This document shows positions 22,090 to 32,965 of a DNA stretch of 64,000 nucleotides, piece by piece. Every line of letters starts with the position of its first letter. The stretch's first letter is position 1. Source of the stretch: Chlorokybus atmophyticus (taxonomy: Eukaryota > Plantae > Mesostigma and Chlorokybus algae); NCBI GenBank assembly GCA_009103225.1, contig RHPI01003041.1, positions 140,308 through 204,307 on the forward strand. Direction: 5' to 3'. The translations under genes were made by a program, and so were the position numbers. The notes under the pieces are model-generated. The model saw nothing but the letters and a program-made list of their open reading frames with translations, was not told the DNA's origin and made no database searches.

Positions 22090-25000
22090 ATGGCTTTGCC
22101 TGAGGGCGGCGTCACCGGCAGCTGGCTGTCCGACATCGCGGGGCACCTCCGGCGGCGGCGCCTCCGCCGCCGTCGTGTGGCGGGCATCGTCCCGGGGGAG
22201 ACGGAAGGCACCGCCCCCCCCGCAGGGAAGCCACCAGAGGAGGAGGCTGGACCTGGGATGGGGCCGCACATAATGGATGCGAATGGGTGTGAGGGGGTAA
22301 ATGGGGTGGGGATGGGAGGGGAGAAGGCGCACATCAACAATACTGCGCCTGGATTAGGGGCGGATGTGCTCACGCCACAGCTGTCGGAAGCAGGGAAATG
22401 CCCGTTCCTACATGGCTCTGTGTCCTGCAGCCCTTACCCAGGTAGGACACCTCATTGAGGGTATGTGTGTGTGTTTGTGTGTGTAGGGTTTCATCGCTTG
22501 TTTCAACACGCAAAAGTACGCACGGAGGACAGTGATAGTATCATTCACATTGGGGGGCTGCTTGCAATAACTATGTGTTGTGACTAAGTGCATTGCCGGT
22601 GGCAAACCGGGCAGGGGTGGTACACATACACTGCTTCTTCATCCTGAGATTGCAGAACCAGTGTATACACTCTTGTACATCCAGGAATATATATCATTTT
22701 GGGAGTGAATTCACACATACTTATACGGGCATACAACCGGTCCATTTTTTGAGCTGGTTTTGTTAATGTGAGTGCCTGCCCCCTCTCACACAACCACTTG
22801 TGAGTTCTTGTGTTGTTGATGAGTCGGTCGTATTGTCACAGGTTATGTTCATGGTCGCCATCCGGAGGTGTGTCCCAACGGTTGCCGGCCTGATGCCAGC
22901 GTGGGTAAGGGTGAGACGAAGAAGCAGACGCTGCTGCGGGAAGCCAAAGAGTTTCAGGTGTGTGTGATTGTGTATGTGTCCTGTCCTTGACGCGATGCAC
23001 GGCTACAAATGCCGTAACTTGTTGCAGATTTTGTACCATCGAGAGCTCAAGTTGTCGGCTGAGACAGAATCTAGGCGATGGGCTGCCATTGCTCAGGTCA
23101 GTCTCGCGCGCAGGCCTGTGCGTGTATGTGTTTGTGCAGTCACAGGCGCACACGCTCCTCTATGTACTGCTGAGTGCTACACAAAGCTTACCACTGATGT
23201 TCGCACACATCAATCTGCAGGAGATAGAGACTACTGGCACATACACGCACACATTGGAAGAACTCGAGCACGGTAAGGAAACACATGTACACACGTACAC
23301 ATGTACACATATGCACACGTACTCCATCAACACACCCGTTGTTGGTAGTGTTGGCCTTATTGAACTTGGAGTTTACAGGGGCGCGTGTTGCATGGAGAAA
23401 TGCCCCCAAGTGCAGCAATCGCAAGTTCTGGAGCGAGCTGACGCTTCTGGACCGGCGTGACGTGACTACTGCGCAAGGCATGCACACGGCGTGTTTGGAC
23501 ATGTTGGAAACAGCCACACTGCACGGCGCAACTGAAGTCTACATCAGCGTCTTCCCACCTACACACCCAATCACCGGTACACATGTTGTGCTGATGTTGT
23601 TGTTGTTGTCGTTGTTTCGCACATAGCGCCCACATTGCCAGATACCTGCAAGTACTAATGATAGTATTTGACATGTTGCGGCGTGTACACTGCTTACACG
23701 GCGTGTCCACGTAGGTGAGGGCGGGCCGAGGATATGGAACACTCAGTTGATGCGTTACGCGGGTTGGAGATTGGAGGACGGCTCGTTGTACGGTGATCCG
23801 GCCGAGGTAAAGTTCACGGAGCTCGTCACCAGGAAGTTCGGGTGGAAACCGGCGAGCGGGAAGCCCTCGCGCTTCGACATACTACCGCTCGTACTACAGG
23901 CCGACCCACGACAGGCACCCGTCATGCTCGATGTGCCGCCGCAGTACGTGTCGGAAGTCCCTCTAGCACACCCTCAGGTGAGAAAGGATTCACGTGTATG
24001 TATGTGTCTGAAGGTGGGTGGCGCGCGCGTGTGTGCATGCGCGCGCGTGTGTGCATGCGCGTGTGTGTGTTGTGCGCGTGCCCGTGTGTACGTAAGTCCA
24101 TGCGCGTGTGCATATGTGTCACTTGATTGTGCAGCACAACACACATATCACTCTCACTCGCTGACCCAACATCACAACATGTGCAGTACCCTTGGTTTGC
24201 GGAGTTGGGTTATCGTTGGTATGGTCTGCCGGCTGTTTCCAACATGGAGCTGAGTCTCGGCGGAATAATGTACACGGCGGCTCCGTTCATCGGGTGGTAC
24301 GCAGACACGGAGATCGTGCGCAACCTCAGCGATGAGAGCCGATACAACACGCTGCCGGAGATTGGAAAACTGCTCGGATACTCCATCACAGAGAACTCAA
24401 ACCTCTGGCGCGATGCAGCACTCGGTAAATGTGTTGTATCATGCTTTTCCCCATGTATAGTCAAACACATGTGTGTTTTACCACAATGCAACTTGGTTGC
24501 CAAGCCCGAGTGTGCTAACAGCACTTGTGCGTGCATCTGAGTAGACACGCACACGTGTGCATGTGCGTGCACGTGCACACATGTAAGTGTGCGTGCGCAC
24601 ATGCCTGTGTATGTCTGTACGTGTGTGCGTGTCACTTGCGTACTAACACTACTTGTATGTGTGCTTGTGTTACAGTGACGCTCAATCAGGCGGTGAACTA
24701 CAGTTTCCGGCAGGCCAGCACGGGCATTGTGGATCACCACACGTTGATGCAGCAGTTTTGGGAGTGGCACAACAAGGAAAAGCAGAGCCGAGGGTACAAC
24801 CCCGGCAACTGGAAGTGGATCATCTCGCCCGTTGCCGCGTCCACAAGCAGATGCTACCTGGGACTCAATAAGATGACTGAGTACACACTCAAGCCAGCGT
24901 AAGCAGCCCACTCCCATGCGTGCAAGTTGTTGTTGCTGCTGCTGCTGCTGTTATTGATTGTTGCTGTTATTGATTCTTGCATGTATGTGTGCACGCACAT

Positions 25001-28000
25001 GCTTCAGCACATATGTACACGCAAGAAAAGCGTGCACACATACTCACATACGTAGAAAACAATAACACAACAACAGCAATGCACGTGTGCGTTATGTATT
25101 GTGTACATGTGAGGGTGCACGTGCACGCGAGTGTGTGCACACATGCATGTGGGCGCGTGTGTGCATGTAAACATTAGGTGTTAACAATATATTTTCCCTG
25201 CTGTACAGTTATCTGTACACTCCAGGGTTTGCCAAGTATGCTCAGCAATGGTTTGGCGACCGATGGGACCTCAGCGAGCTACCGCTGAGGCCGGTCACCA
25301 CCAACCCGTACGTCATCAAGATGCTCGGCAGGATGCAGACCATCGCCCACTCCTTCAGCGCTAAACCCCGCATACTGATCGTGTACGCAACTGTTTCGGG
25401 CACCGCCAAAGACTACGCCTCCCGCACTGCTCAGGTACATACTTCCATGTATACGATATGTGTACACTTGAAGCTACACATGCACGTACACATACACATA
25501 TACTGACAATAAATGCCACAGGATCTCCAATGTACATTCAAGTATTGGTATTAGTAAAAACTACAATGCACACATGCACATACATATATATGTACACATA
25601 CACACTTGTTAACTCAGCGTCAGTGAACATGGAAAACACAATCATAACAACGAAACACCACACTTGTCAACACATAAGGTGTTGCTGCAATGCCATAGTG
25701 CATGACTCCTATGCATACATGACAGATGCTGAAAAGCGAGTTTCAAGTAATCCTGTTGGATGTTGAGAACTTCCAGCCAGAAGACCACCATCCCGACACG
25801 TACCACTTGCTCATCATCATCTCATCAACGTATGGGGCGGGCTCACCGCCCGCCTCAGCCTTCCGCTTCTTGAGATGGCTCACATTGCAGGTAAATCAAC
25901 CAATCACCATATGTGAACATTGTATGGTGTTTCAATGCAGCGAGCGGTGCGTGTGCGTGTGTGTATGGGCATGTGCGCGTGTGTGCGCACGTGCGCATAA
26001 GCGTGTGCATAAGTGTGTGCAGGTGTGCATGCTCATACGCGTGCGTGTGACTTAACATAATTGTTATGTGGCATGCTGTATGGTAGTTAACACTGATACA
26101 TGTGTGTGTGTTTGTAGCGTGAAGCGGCCTCGCTCAAGGGTTGCTGCTTCTCGGTGTTTGGCATCGGCAGCAGCAGCTACCCTCGTTTTTGCGCTGCGGC
26201 TGACACGATCCACGCGATGATGCTCGCGTCCGGCGCAAAACCCCTCGGCAACCCGGGCAAAGGCGACGCCATCGGCGGGAGGGACATGGCTTTCAAAGAC
26301 TGGCTCACGGCCACAATGCAATCCTTCAGAGACCATCTAACGGTATGTGGACTTTGCGTGCACAACAGCAGCAGCAACAACAACACTGATGACAACATGT
26401 TGCAGACTGCGGGTGGGATGGAGAAATGCGATAGAGTTATCAACTTGATACAAGACACAGCCGTCACGACCTTCCAGCAGATATACAACTTGGTTCACCT
26501 CTCAGGCATGCATGTTTACTATCACACTGTGTCACTCGTGCTTACCCATCTACATAAGAGACACGCATGAGAACGTGTGTGTGTATCGTTATCTCTCAAC
26601 CAGGTGCGATGAAGTTGGCTCACGACACGCGGTGGCTCGTCGCGCCGATCACGGAGGTCGCCGAGGTTTTGCCTCCCGAAGCGCAAACAGAGGGGCGGTC
26701 GGTGTGTTTGGTCAAGATAGACTTGTCCGACATACCAACAGCGCTTTACGCCCCTGGTGAGTATGAAACCCACAAGTGTATGTGTGGTTGTGTGTGGGCA
26801 TGTTGATACTGATGTGTGGTGTTGTGATGATCAGGTGACCATATAGCTGTGCTGCCAACCAACCATCAGCTCAGCAATGCGGAGTTGGAAACCCTGGCTG
26901 AGCATCTGGGCATTGAGGACCTCGACGGGGTGTTTGACCTCGAGGTAAAGTGTATCTGTGTGTTTGCGCGCTCGTAGGTGTGGGTGTGCGTGTGCATGGG
27001 TGGGTCATGCTGTTACAGAATTTGTTGCTGACCAACAATACTCCGTATCAGGTGCTTGATGAGGACGGGGCGCTTGAGGCTGGTTTCAATGGGAAGAAGT
27101 TCCCTCTTCCCAACACGTTCCGTGTGATCCTGGACGAGCACGTGGCTTTAATGAGCCCTGTCGCTGCCGCGGCGCTGCCCGTCCTCGCCCAATACGCCGG
27201 CACAGACGCCGACGCCCACGAGCTCGCCGAACTCGGACGCAGCGAACACGCTGCAGAGACGTGGCAAGCCCACAGTCAGGTACACAACATCAACAACAAT
27301 TCAACGTATTATGTAGTATGTGGTACGAATTGTGCCTTGTGACAGGTTCGGTGGGCGGATTTGTTCCAAGAGTTTCCTTCCCTTTCTGGGAGGGTCCCGT
27401 TTGAGGTGTTTCTGCAGCTGGCGCCGGCGCTGTACCCGCGATACTACTCGATAGCCAGCAGCAACTGGGGCAGGGTAAGACATCTGTCTCATGTGACTGG
27501 GGATCAGCGACCACTGTAGTGTCCAGCTGATTGATTATGCTGCGGATGGCATAATTTGTGAGCTCATGTAGATAGAATACACATGCACACATACACATAC
27601 ACGTACATGTACATAAGTACACACGTGCATATGCACACACGCACGCCCATGCGCGAATGCACATGCACATGCACACACGCACGCACATGCAGCCCACATA
27701 CTTAGCATAGCATTCTCAACTGCAACCCTTTCATCAGGAGCGGCCTGGCGTGCACGCGCTGGTGGGTCTCCTTTCCTACCAGCTCCCTTCGGGTCAATCC
27801 CGTCTGGGCCAGTGTTCGAGCTACCTTGTCCACGCGCGCGCGGGGTCGTACGTGCGCTTCAGGTTGACCAAAGTGACGTCGTTCCGGCAACCGATGAAGA
27901 CGTCGAGTCCGATCATCATGGTCGCGGCGGGGACGGGCATCGCGCCGTTCCTCGGGTTCATACAACATCGCATACAGCTCGGAAGACAGGGGAACATGGG

Positions 28001-31000
28001 ACCGTGCATACTTGTATTTGGCTGCCGCACGCAAGCAGACCGACTCTGTTGGTACGCACTGGCTCACTGCTACTCTGCCGCAATGTTGTGCAAATGCACA
28101 GGCGTGTCCGTGCACACATATACGGACACGCATGCACACATGAGCGTGCATGCCCACCCACGCACGCACACATGCGCGCCAGAGGGCACATCAACACGAG
28201 CACTCATATGCACATGCACGCGCATGCATCAATGCGTGAGCGTGCGCTTGGGACCACATACAGGCACACGCACACATGCACGCGCACGCGCATGCGCCTG
28301 CACACATGTGCTTACAGAACAGCAGGTGCATTCGCACAATTGCGTCGTTGGGTTTGTCATGCCTTTGTCTGCGCTAACAGGGAGGAAGTGGAAAGGGGGC
28401 AAGCATGTGGTGCACTCAGCGAGGTCATCCTCGCATACTCAAGAGAACCCGGCAGAAGGAAACACTACGTGCAGGACGTGATTATGGCGGTGAGTCACTT
28501 TACAGATACACTCACGTCTACATACCAACACATGGCTCACATAAGCTCACACAACCACTCGCCAACAAAACAGGAAAAGAAGAAGCTAACAGCCCTGCTG
28601 AAAGCACCTGACGCACACATATACGTGTGCGGAGACAGCCACATGGCCAGCGCCGTATCCTCTGCCTTCACATCCATCATCGGTACACACACAACACAAC
28701 ACCCTCAAACCTGCACCCACTCCAATGTGGCAATGTTGTCTCATGTACGTGCGGATGTGTGTCAACAACTCAGGTACTGAGGCGATGACGTCGATGACGG
28801 TGGAGTGCCGGTTCCACGAGGACGTGTTTGGCGTGGTGCTCAAGTCGGCGGACAGGTTGTCTGTGGCGCGACACATCGCGGCCGACCGCAACGGACACAG
28901 GCCCATACTTAAAGCCGCGCTCGCCAACGACCTCGCAGAGGTGAGGGTTGGGTTGGGTGCATTGCTGCAACAGTGCAATGGTTGGTTTACTTTGTTGTGT
29001 GGTAAAGTTGCAGGTAGAGTGGTAGGGCATGCATTGCAGTAAGTTGCATGGACACAACATGCTTGGGTGACTTACATGACAGCAGCACTTGTTGCGTACA
29101 GTGTGGTGTTGGTGCACATAGAGATCTGTACACACGTGTGCGTGCTCCTTGCTTGTGTGTTTGCATATATGTATATGCGGGCACACGCACACGTACATGC
29201 GCGCACACGTGCACACGCGCGTATGCACTCGTGCTGCTGATGCATATCTGCCTGGACCCAACCCATTTGCTCGGCAGGTTTCTCGGTTGTTGGTTGAGGG
29301 CGCGGACATCACTGCGGCCGACAGCGACGCCAACTCTCTGCTTCACATCGCTGCGGAGATCGGCTCATCAGAGTTGACAAGACTTCTTCTCCAGTACAAC
29401 GCGCCTCTCAAGTCGGTCAACAACTGGAACCTCACGCCCGCCGCGCTCGCCCAAGTGCGAGGACAGCCAGACATACGCGACGCCATCATCGAAGCGGGAG
29501 GAACACTCGCGAGCGGCATGCATCGATGTTTTTACCCACTGCACTCTGCCGCCGTTGAGGGCACAGCTGAAGGTGTGGGTGTGCGCGCGTGTTGTTGTGT
29601 GGGTGTGCGTGTGCGCGTGTTTGTGTGTACGTGCGTGTGCGTACTGAATATGTGCGCGCGTATGCATGTGTGCAGGTTGTTGTGCACATGTGCGTGTGTA
29701 CTGCTGTGTACTGCAAGATGCAAACATTGGGCACTTGCTGAGTGTGTGGCGTTGTGTTGGGCAGACATCAAGCGGTTACTGGCCCAGAACGCGGACCCGT
29801 GGACGGCCGACTACTACGGTTGCACGCCGCTGCGTATGGCCGCGATGACGGGCAACCTGGACACGCTGTGGACTTTGCTTCAGGCTCCTGATGCTGCGGG
29901 CATCGTCAACGCGGTGGACAGGTACGGCCACACGGCGCTGGCGGCCGCGCTGGCGTTCCAGCAGTACTCCGCCGCCAACATGCTCAAGCCCGTCGGGGCA
30001 CGCATCACTGCCTCGAGCACCAACTTCACGGCGTGGCCGAGCCTCAGCCACTGGAGCCCGAGCAACAGCCGAACACTGTCACCAGCACAGATCACCCGAG
30101 CGCAGGCCTTGTAAGTGCACATGCACACATGCACACACATGTGCGCTCGCACACGCACCCACGCACATGCACAGACACACGTGTGCACGATCATATGCGC
30201 ACGCACACACACCCGTGCACATGCAAGCGCACACTCGCATGCACGCACACCTCTTTGCATATCCACCTGCGTGTATGTGTATATGTGTATATGCTGTGAG
30301 GCGCAAAGGTCTAATCTCGTGGGTGCTTGGCAGGTGGGGGGCCATTGCTAGCAACAGCTTCCCCGAAGAGACCACGGCCGCGCTCACGAGCGCCGGCGTG
30401 ATGCTCTTCAACAACCTGTTTGAGATGTCGCCGCACGTGTTGGATCTGTTTCCTTTCAAGGATGACACCGGAAAGCCATTCCAACAGGTGCCCACACACT
30501 CACCCTCTTTCTCGTACATCATAATGCATGTGTACCCAACAAACCAACATGTCGTCATCATGCAGGTGTTGGAGGCTCACGCGCTTCAAGTGATGACCAC
30601 GTTGGGTCGCGTGGTGGAGGGTCTGAACGACATCGAGACGCTGGTGCCGTTCCTGCGGGACCTCACCGCGCGCCACGTCCCGTACGGCGTGGAGCTCGTG
30701 CACTACGACATCCTCAGCGCCACGCTGCTGCGGACCTTTGAACAAACGCTCGGCAACCTCTTTACGCCGGTACGCATGCGTGGGTTGGATGTTGGATCTT
30801 TTCACACCCTCCTCATCTCTTCATGTTTGCATGCGCGTGTGCCTGTGCGCGCGTGCGTGTGCGTGCGTGCGCATTATACCATGTTACATTTACATTGCAC
30901 AACTGGTGGCATTGTCTGAGATTTTTTGTTGTTATGTGCAGGAGGACAGGGACGTATGGCAGGCGATGTTCGACATCATAGGCAGCGTTGCGAGGGAAGC

Positions 31001-31013
31001 GTACCCGCACTGA
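22090..31013 (+). CDS. NOS: Nitric oxide synthase with C-terminal ankyrin repeats and globin (oxygenase-FMN-FAD/NADPH-ANK-globin), over 20 exons
   Basis: Oxygenase: [18 protein letters not shown]|[78 protein letters not shown]: [44 protein letters not shown]: PG|[62 protein letters not shown]. These are followed by ankyrin and globin domains; stop TGA at 31011-31013. The start codon is the least certain part. Confidence 0.95.
28880..30010 (+). other. Ankyrin-repeat domain of the NOS fusion
   Basis: [60 protein letters not shown]|[54 protein letters not shown]. In frame with RFHEDVFG across canonical introns. Confidence 0.9.
30073..31013 (+). other. 3/3-fold globin domain at the NOS C-terminus
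   Basis: [12 protein letters not shown]|WGAIA (A helix), [21 protein letters not shown] (B/CD1 Phe), [15 protein letters not shown] (E7 His), [18 protein letters not shown] (F8 His), FTP|[13 protein letters not shown] (H helix). Confidence 0.92.
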
Positions 31014-32965
31014 TATTTGTTGGGGTGGGGTGAGCAGTATTTATTTGGGATGGGTGGGTAAGGGTATCTTGTAGTTTTTTTATTTGATGGGAAGAAAGCG
31101 CCTGATGACGGGCGCTCTTCTTCTTTACTAGCAGTATAGCGCCCGGTAGCGGTAGCGGTAGTGTGCGTACTGCCTTGATTGTGCGCGGCTTTGTTTCAGC
31201 TGGGCTGCACATTGCGCCGCAGCTTAGGTTAGGGACAACACATTGTGAATAACTACGGTATGCATGTGTGCGCGAGGGTCTCTCAACACAATGACATAGG
31301 TGCAAGTGGCGAACCAACATCATTGCGTAGTTGAAACAAATGTAAGTAGGGATGTGAAGTTGTGGTTGGTACGAGCATTAGAGGTTTGTTGGTATGATGT
31401 ATAATTGGTGTGCAAAATGTTAGGTCAATCGAGTAGGGTGGTACGAGAGAAACGTCTTATGATGATTTAACTTAATCGCTCAATAAGGTTGTTAAGCGAC
31501 TTAGTTGATGCATATGCAGCCACTCAAACCTCAAACAATGCGTTGTACACAAAGTGGCGAGGTAAATGCACTTTCTTGGAAATGGGTTATTGCTAATTGT
31601 AATGCATAAAGCCATGACTTAGTTTCACGGGTTGATGAGTCATATAATCAGCAATCCTTCAGATTCTCAATTGTTGAAACCATTTTAACATACATAAAAC
31701 TCATACGCTATATAATTGCAACTTTTGTTAACGAGAGTGTATTTGCAGACAAAACATTGATGTGCTATGAGTTAAATACAGCGTATTAAGATGTTTTTAT
31801 TCCATTGGTAATGAATTATTGCAAATGCAATCAATAAGCATGGCGCATGGGTTGTGACAAAACCTAATCAATCATCAATGTATAACACATGCGCAAAATG
31901 TTTGTGTATGTCCCTATGAAACTTGTCAATTTCAACATGTATATTATAGCATACCGACAGAAATAATTTCAAGACAACAAATGTAAGACACAATCCTTGA
32001 ATAGGTGCCCGAAATCTAGTGTGAATTTATGACTAATAATGTATACATAAACTGATACGTGACTCACCTGCTTGCTGCAGCCTTTATCAATGTAGGCTAC
32101 ATGATGATGATAAGCCGAGAATGAAAGATATGTACACTTTATAATATGATATTACAAGCAACAACTTGTGTGTACATTATGAAATATATATAATGTATAC
32201 TACTCAAACGTTTACGATAATGCATATGTACGTATGCGTCAATGAAAACTTTTGTCGTGCTTAACTTGTCCCATTTACTCAAATCAAAGCCATGTCTCAA
32301 TAAAGCCCCGTGTTAAAAACCGCGTGCGGCTTGAGATTTAAGAGAGGGGGGCTTTTTCAGAGCACATACGTTATAGAGGTTATAAATAATATAACAATAA
32401 CATCAGTAATCAAGGAAGTTAGACAAGCTTGTAACGTGAAACACGAATGTAGTCATACAACATGAACGTCACCAATTTGTCTATTGTCGAACACTAGACC
32501 TCGTTGAACACCCTTGTCACAGGCCCTTGTGTCCCAAGGCCGTACCGCCGACCACCGACAACCGACGTCGGCCCTCTTAGGTCGATAACCACCTGATTTT
32601 GTTTTTGTTATATTTTCCCGTTCTTTCCTTGGCCTTTATTTCCCCAGATCCAAGCACACTGCTTTGCTCCAAGCGCTTGGGTGGGCGGGCGGGCTTGCAA
32701 ACAATCAGGCCAGCGGCGTCAGGGCGCAAGTCAGTCGTGGATGGACTCTTGATTGGAGCTGTGTGGTACACACACGCACACACATACTATTCTGTATACA
32801 CAACCATCTGCCTACACACACTCTCCAATATTCTGCTTCCAGACATACAAAGAGCCAGAGTTGGCCAATTCGTCAAATGGTTTCGAGATAATCTCATTAG
32901 TCAAATTTAGCAACAGCAGCAGAAGAGTAGTGCTAAGGTAGAGTTAGCAGCAAGCAAGCTCAGAT

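Follow-up and report, generated by a model that had tools for sequence, protein, structure and literature searches.

The stretch of DNA analysed here, a window of 64,000 nucleotides from contig RHPI01003041.1 of the streptophyte alga Chlorokybus atmophyticus, carries between positions 22090 and 31013 of the forward strand a gene whose predicted product joins a nitric oxide (NO) synthase (NOS), a block of ankyrin repeats and a C-terminal globin in one polypeptide. A splice model guided by tblastn of the Chlorokybus paralog Chrsp180S02868 (P0010) and of KnNOS2 from Klebsormidium nitens yields one open frame of 25 exons (4623 nt, 1540 codons plus stop) with no internal stop, reaching from an ATG at 22090 to the single stop codon at 31011-31013. 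The initial annotation of this locus, made from the sequence alone, had described intact NOS modules that splice in frame into ankyrin repeats and a globin with no stop until 31011, and the 25-exon model confirms this. The domain profiles named there (NO_synthase, Flavodoxin_1, FAD_binding_1, NAD_binding_1, Ank and Globin) were all matched, and in that order; profile searches were made on single exons and on the public JGI model (P0151), and the remaining whole-protein work was done with local scripts. Overall, we are highly confident in the explanation developed below, namely one Chlorokybus nuclear gene of the NOS-Globin class, of the KnNOS2 type, together with a proposed mechanism and evolutionary history whose parts are graded separately.

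The NOS oxygenase domain (residues 103-510, exons 1-9, 22396-25227) is matched by PF02898 on exons 5-8 (E 5e-15 to 2e-30), with these four exons covering profile positions 55-116, 117-200, 198-280 and 283-352. It contains the CPFLHG hook with Cys104, a Cys-X3-Cys motif (CPNGC, residues 128-132, 22871-22885), the haem-thiolate Cys208 within WRNAPKC (23411-23413), the arginine-binding Glu392 within GWYADTEI (24310-24312) and the pterin residues Arg395, Trp475 and Trp477. In the alignment, Cys208, Glu392, Arg395, Trp475 and Trp477 fall together with their counterparts in bat iNOS and shark nNOS. A linker (residues 511-555, 25228-25362) with a candidate calmodulin-type amphipathic helix, aligned at the position of the mammalian calmodulin-binding helix, leads to the flavin mononucleotide (FMN) or flavodoxin domain (residues 556-709, 25363-26342), matched by PF00258 on exons 10-11 (profile 25-74 and 80-140). 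Compared with bat iNOS and shark nNOS, the FMN motifs and, at the reductase end, RFHEDVFG are in place, and the autoinhibitory insert is absent from the alignment. The connecting, flavin adenine dinucleotide (FAD) and NADPH domains follow (residues 710-1146, 26406-28832), with PF00667 on exons 15-16 (profile 87-147 and 156-190), PF00175 on exons 17 and 19 (profile 1-42 and 85-108) and the reductase motifs RYYSIASS (938-945), GTGIAPF (1014-1020) and RFHEDVFG (1139-1146). Within each of the four NOS families, the single-exon matches run in profile order along the gene. By its domains and residues the core is a complete eukaryotic-type NO synthase, predicted to form NO, and a single frame encodes every part required for NO synthesis and for haem binding by the globin. 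Animal NOS (iNOS-like) and the tail-less algal KnNOS1 have the same oxygenase-FMN-FAD/NADPH core and catalytic residues without any tail, and OtNOS, compared from the literature only, is likewise a tail-less algal NOS.

Behind the reductase, a linker helix and five to six ankyrin repeats (residues 1147-1366, 28833-30015; Pfam Ank_2, Ank and Ank_4 on exons 21-22) are followed by a conserved linker (residues 1367-1386, 30016-30075) and by the globin domain (residues 1387-1540, exons 22-25, 30076-31010; PF00042 on exon 24, profile 34-99). The linker between ankyrin repeats and globin (about 20-24 residues) shares 88% identity with the paralog and 61% with KnNOS2, exceeding both flanking domains, and may act as a hinge or docking peptide. 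The globin has Phe1423 at B10, Phe1437 at CD1, His1454 at E7 (30578-30580) and His1486 at F8 (30674-30676). When the globin of the paralog was compared with PDB sequences, the Methylacidiphilum globin (1.8e-15) and neuroglobin (~1e-9) were matched, as were Vitreoscilla haemoglobin and the plant class-1 non-symbiotic haemoglobin nsHb1. In that alignment a Phe and a His of the paralog sit opposite the Tyr and Gln of the Methylacidiphilum globin, which we take to be helix positions B10 and E7, and in a multiple alignment these columns correspond to Phe1423 and His1454 of the Chlorokybus protein. Judged by its sequence, the domain is a neuroglobin-like or non-symbiotic-haemoglobin-like 3/3 globin of the M-family. 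An AlphaFold2 model of the homologous KnNOS2 tail (pLDDT 76) contains a long helix, an ankyrin solenoid of five to six repeats, a disordered stretch that matches the conserved linker and a seven-helix 3/3 globin, with a pTM of 0.43 that makes the relative placing of ankyrin block and globin unreliable. A Foldseek search with this model returned DARPins and natural ankyrins only, nothing specific. Between the two Chlorokybus paralogs, identity is 61% in the ankyrin repeats and 64% in the globin, against 64% in the FMN and 61% in the FAD domain; the tail is as conserved as the reductase and hence is under constraint.

That these domains belong to one gene follows from two exons. Exon 20 (28774-28946) runs from the last reductase motif, RFHEDVFG, straight into the tail, whose first 38 residues it encodes without an intervening stop, the C-terminal extension simply continuing the reductase reading frame. 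Exon 22 (29765-30110) spans ankyrin repeats 4-5 and the linker and reaches into the first turn of globin helix A. Since each of these exons crosses a domain border, NOS, ankyrin repeats and globin cannot be separate genes. The JGI Chlat1 model Chrsp63S00556 (P0151), an independent public model, joins the same domains, and a single NOS-ankyrin-globin mRNA in Chlorokybus is very likely. It is very improbable that the fusion is an annotation artefact in which a NOS gene and an adjoining ankyrin-globin gene have been read as one. The search for Chlorokybus transcripts found none, and a 325-residue MMETSP isoform (P0066), labelled complete, consists of a partial ankyrin region and the globin only, both of which would suit such an artefact. 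Against it stand not only the composition of exons 20 and 22 and the frame, kept at every junction, but also the recurrence of the same fusion in transcript-derived open reading frames of relatives and in at least eight species, and P0066 itself clusters with a 1032-residue reductase-ankyrin-globin transcript (P0316). Even more remote is the reading of the gene as a silent or degenerating copy of Chrsp180S02868. Two paralogs do exist, but there are 4623 nt without stop or frameshift, intact catalytic motifs throughout and even conservation across the domains.

From 22.0 to 31.1 kb, the forward strand shows many short open stretches in three frames, encoding peptides in the order NOS oxygenase, flavodoxin, ferredoxin-NADP reductase (FNR), ankyrin and globin, with low-complexity tracts rich in TG, CA and GC lying between the coding stretches. 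The exons are located at 22090-22441, 22842-22957, 23028-23096, 23221-23272 and 23379-23576 (exons 1-5); 23715-23977, 24187-24424, 24676-24898, 25209-25434 and 25726-25890 (exons 6-10); 26118-26342, 26406-26505, 26604-26756, 26835-26944 and 27052-27279 (exons 11-15); 27346-27474, 27738-28051, 28381-28489, 28574-28682 and 28774-28946 (exons 16-20); and 29278-29572, 29765-30110, 30334-30487, 30566-30769 and 30942-31013 (exons 21-25), all on the forward strand. Junctions were placed by anchoring on conserved peptides, listing all frame-keeping GT/GC...AG pairs and choosing among them by tblastn of four full-length relatives. Of the resulting 24 introns, 23 are GT-AG and one, of 98 nt (26506-26603, donor CAG|GCATGC), is GC-AG, the sole non-GT donor; only this junction gives a peptide matching HVSGAKRLAPD of the paralog, with the spacing found in KnNOS2. 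The GT-AG pair 26514/26615 would produce HLSGMHLAHD and was rejected, as homologues disagree with it, and other splice alternatives were likewise dropped where homologues disagreed. Exons and introns are clearly distinct in composition, exons having a GC content of 0.60 and introns one of 0.49. Runs of TG, CA and GC, in which purines and pyrimidines alternate, account for 34% of the sequence of the introns (22442-30941) and for 2% of that of the exons, and yield long spurious open reading frames of the 'CVCVRAC' kind on both strands. Downstream of the stop codon, a first TGTAA motif is found at 31341, with AT-rich sequence after it. The least certain point of the model is its start, which might be Met1 (22090) or Met57 (22258, the JGI start). 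Residues 1-102 (22090-22395) form a non-conserved N-terminal region with 23% identity to the paralog, and an Arg-rich stretch within it (22144-22185), which neither the paralog nor the JGI model has, may be a targeting signal or else an untranslated leader.

Neither the architecture nor the Chlorokybus gene itself is new to the literature, because Chatelain et al. (2021) already list the accession as a NOS-Globin chimera: they name chrsp63S00556 'CaNOS' and place it with KnNOS2 among chimeras with an ankyrin motif and an M-family globin, reported from the seven species K. nitens (KnNOS2), Gonium, Chlorokybus, Mesostigma, C. incerta, C. schloesseri and E. debaryana (PMC8728061). The initial annotation had cited this layout for KnNOS2 and called it rare and uncharacterised rather than unprecedented; both statements hold, since KnNOS2 is such a chimera and has the same domain order in our alignment, and the published record extends to the Chlorokybus accession (PMC8728061). 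Chatelain et al. ask for functional work on these chimeras (PMC8728061), and literature searches on NOS-globin chimeras, Chlorokybus and KnNOS gave no later characterisation of an algal member. What is new here is a corrected gene model, exon-level proof of the fusion, further members of the class including transcript-derived ones, and a globin tree that argues for a single origin. All 1419 residues of JGI Chrsp63S00556 align to our model, 1418 of them identical and the lone mismatch lying at a splice junction. The new model is 121 residues longer: it has 56 additional, uncertain residues at the N-terminus and restores seven internal segments passed over in the JGI model, where other splice sites are used (23957-23977, 26118-26138, 26491-26505 plus 26604-26612, 27738-27782, 28941-28946, 29528-29572 and 30078-30110). 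Homologues carry residues at all seven places. Two of the restored segments, VPLAHPQ in the oxygenase domain and a 15-residue segment of the FAD barrel, are also found in animal NOS, and another two, a 15-residue segment of an ankyrin repeat and an 11-residue segment of globin helix A, are kept in every tailed relative. Cloning from the JGI model would give a protein without part of the FAD barrel, one ankyrin repeat and globin helix A, and the correct full-length model is needed ahead of any expression of the Chlorokybus enzyme.

The same layout recurs in the paralog Chrsp180S02868, Klebsormidium KnNOS2, Mesostigma Mv07497, Chlamydomonas schloesseri KAG2450636, Micractinium tetrahymenae and a second gene of Edaphochlamys, as well as in Apatococcus lobatus (P0152), whose public model ends inside the globin. 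Two transcript-derived sequences add to these: a Logan contig (L001, SRR29268390) of 4687 nt with one uninterrupted fused open reading frame of 1485 residues and an Illumina adapter at its end, and the MMETSP transcript P0316, which aligns to residues 542-1535 of the new model. P0066 and P0316 (MMETSP transcripts 57863 and 57864) come from one marine protist transcriptome; P0066 starts inside the ankyrin region and could be either an isoform with an internal start or a fragment from the assembly. The closest comparison is the paralog, which has the same architecture and 62% identity overall and is the sister of the Chlorokybus gene in both trees described below. It lies on another scaffold and differs at the N-terminus, residues 1-100 of the new model not being conserved in it, and the ankyrin and FAD regions are incomplete in its public model. 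KnNOS2 (KFL_006460015 / GAQ90485.1) has NOS, ankyrin repeats and globin in the same order with 42-64% identity per domain, and shares the conserved linker (ARVTASST..WPS..WSPS) and the globin clade with the Chlorokybus gene. It belongs to another lineage, its public model is N-terminally truncated, and its sister in the core tree, KnNOS1, is tail-less, whereas both Chlorokybus paralogs keep the tail. In Edaphochlamys debaryana (L082:10001-29266), a tail-less NOS (1279 residues) is followed 3 kb downstream on the same strand by a NOS-ankyrin-globin gene (1519 residues), and no remnant of a tail was found after the tail-less copy. Among prokaryotes, the highest identity to algal oxygenase exon 7 (60-63%) came from haloarchaeal loci of a Natrialbaceae metagenome-assembled genome (L002) and of Halovenus rubra (L003).

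A tree of the NOS core, built from 33 rows and 1044 columns, places all tail-bearing NOS in one clade of the green lineage (85/84), mixed with tail-less NOS. Chlorokybus contributes one sister pair (100/100) and Klebsormidium, with KnNOS1 and KnNOS2, another (100/98). The initial annotation had proposed a phylogeny with both Klebsormidium proteins, and the Chlorokybus gene indeed groups with them, its paralog and Apatococcus (5 rows, 100/99). The trebouxiophyte Apatococcus lobatus (P0152) nests within this streptophyte NOS group (100/99), apart from other chlorophytes, which suggests old paralogy or gene transfer. For the globin, a tree was built with the 121 other globins that came closest among 1.84 billion representatives; it unites the eight NOS-attached globins and two fragments of unknown context in one clade (96/84). 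Multi-globin proteins of sea urchin, starfish and a dinoflagellate head the representative search with the globin, and score high only because each has many domains. A search with the tail profile among 5.8 billion proteins (222-707 residues) found no free-standing ankyrin-globin family; the matches were generic ankyrin proteins, save for P0066, a short isoform or fragment of a reductase-ankyrin-globin transcript. The globin clade, the core clade and the absence of a free-standing ankyrin-globin family together favour, with moderate confidence, a tail that arose once and was later lost several times, often after duplication. This evidence is limited by the support of the core clade, which is not high, and by the incompleteness of several public algal models. 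Chatelain et al. had raised independent origins of the chimeras as a possibility (PMC8728061). We consider the chances evenly balanced that the NOS-ankyrin-globin enzyme is a single invention of the green lineage that predates the streptophyte/chlorophyte split, with the linker inherited, the enzyme trimmed repeatedly to a plain NOS after duplication (as in KnNOS1/KnNOS2 and the Edaphochlamys tandem) and the gene lost before land plants.

As to function, we tentatively favour, at somewhat less than an even chance, a globin that acts as an NO dioxygenase within the enzyme and draws its electrons from the enzyme's own diflavin reductase. Electrons from NADPH would pass through FAD and FMN to the NOS haem, where NO would be made from arginine, and the same diflavin reductase would hold the C-terminal globin ferrous. 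The oxygenated globin would then convert part of the NO to nitrate, like the globin of syNOS, and the enzyme would thereby set its own NO/nitrate ratio. The ankyrin block might be a stiff spacer or offer a surface for docking, with the conserved linker as a hinge or docking peptide. The precedent named in the initial annotation, the N-terminal globin of cyanobacterial syNOS that oxidises NO to nitrate, stands: the globin of syNOS from Synechococcus PCC 7335 is an NO dioxygenase and becomes reduced on addition of NADPH (PMC6104048, PMC12922734). Both enzymes combine a full NOS and a globin in one polypeptide; in syNOS, however, the globin is N-terminal, ankyrin repeats are missing and a C2 domain confers Ca2+ control, whereas the Chlorokybus globin is the last domain. 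No C2 family was among the Pfam matches of P0151 or of the exons, and no N-terminal-globin protein of the size of syNOS was among the 150 closest representatives of the Chlorokybus globin. A scan of genome contigs for syNOS with the oxygenase profile returned bacterial and archaeal NOS oxygenase loci only. The one cyanobacterial match, in Dolichospermum sp. UHCC 0259 (L049:18-1931), has an FNR-like module N-terminal to the NOS oxygenase and no globin, unlike syNOS. The second precedent is flavohaemoglobin (Hmp), where a globin and an NAD(P)H/FAD reductase in one chain provide the functional logic proposed here for the Chlorokybus enzyme. Hmp carries its globin N-terminally, directly next to the FNR module, with Tyr B10 / Gln E7 in the pocket; the Chlorokybus globin, by comparison, is C-terminal behind ankyrin repeats and combines Phe B10 with His E7. 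Given the analogy to both syNOS and flavohaemoglobin, the idea of a combined NO source and sink, with the reductase recycling the globin iron, seems reasonable. Delivery of NO to ankyrin-bound partners, also raised in the initial annotation, is neither favoured nor disfavoured by the data.

Several observations weigh against this overall explanation. Transcript or protein evidence from Chlorokybus was not found by an exact look-up of P0151 or by a search with exon 22 (fragments of 63-200 residues), and the different splice sites of the JGI model at seven places might represent alternative isoforms. In the core, the zinc motif is Cys-X3-Cys and not the Cys-X4-Cys of the dimer-interface Zn site; the former occurs in all green-lineage relatives aligned and the latter in animal NOS, and the Cys-X3-Cys form has been noted for KnNOS (PMC8728061). 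The candidate calmodulin helix has no Pfam match. The clade that unites the tail-bearing NOS has 85/84 support only. Regarding the proposed dioxygenase, the globin lies at the opposite end from that of syNOS and is separated from the reductase by ~240 residues of ankyrin, its pocket of Phe B10 / His E7 is of a type that is often hexacoordinate rather than the Tyr B10 / Gln E7 of flavohaemoglobins, and the role is drawn purely by analogy.

The same pocket lends itself to a different, somewhat unlikely role for the globin as a regulatory sensor, in which O2, NO or redox state at a probably hexacoordinate haem would move the tail and gate electron flow from FMN to the NOS haem, giving feedback on NO. 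Phe B10, His E7 and His F8, together with the matches to neuroglobin and non-symbiotic haemoglobins, are typical of hexacoordinate signalling or scavenging globins; the strongly conserved linker, predicted to be disordered, could be a switch element, and a further control element would make sense in a NOS without the autoinhibitory insert. On the other hand, no sensor-globin features were detected, and the sole characterised NOS-linked globin, that of syNOS, is catalytic; nothing in the data separates a sensor from a dioxygenase. Improbable by comparison is a globin that acts as a second, O2-independent NO source, where its deoxy-ferrous form, reduced by the flavins, would turn nitrite into NO in hypoxia and so complement the NOS. 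Neuroglobin and plant class-1 haemoglobins, which the globin resembles, are reported to show nitrite reductase activity, but in air such an activity would be redundant with the arginine-dependent NO source rather than complementary.

Few NOS-ankyrin-globin enzymes are complete; that of Chlorokybus is one of them, and Chlorokybus ranks among the streptophytes that branched off earliest. With a single origin of the tail, one would no longer ask why the fusion was invented in several algae, but what role the fused ancestor had and what led to its trimming or loss. Were the globin a built-in NO dioxygenase, the NOS ancestral to the green lineage would have turned arginine into nitrate or limited its own NO output, and would not have been a plain NO source. 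Land plants are without NOS; among living organisms, the streptophyte algae that retain it give the closest view of how NO was once made and removed in the plant lineage.

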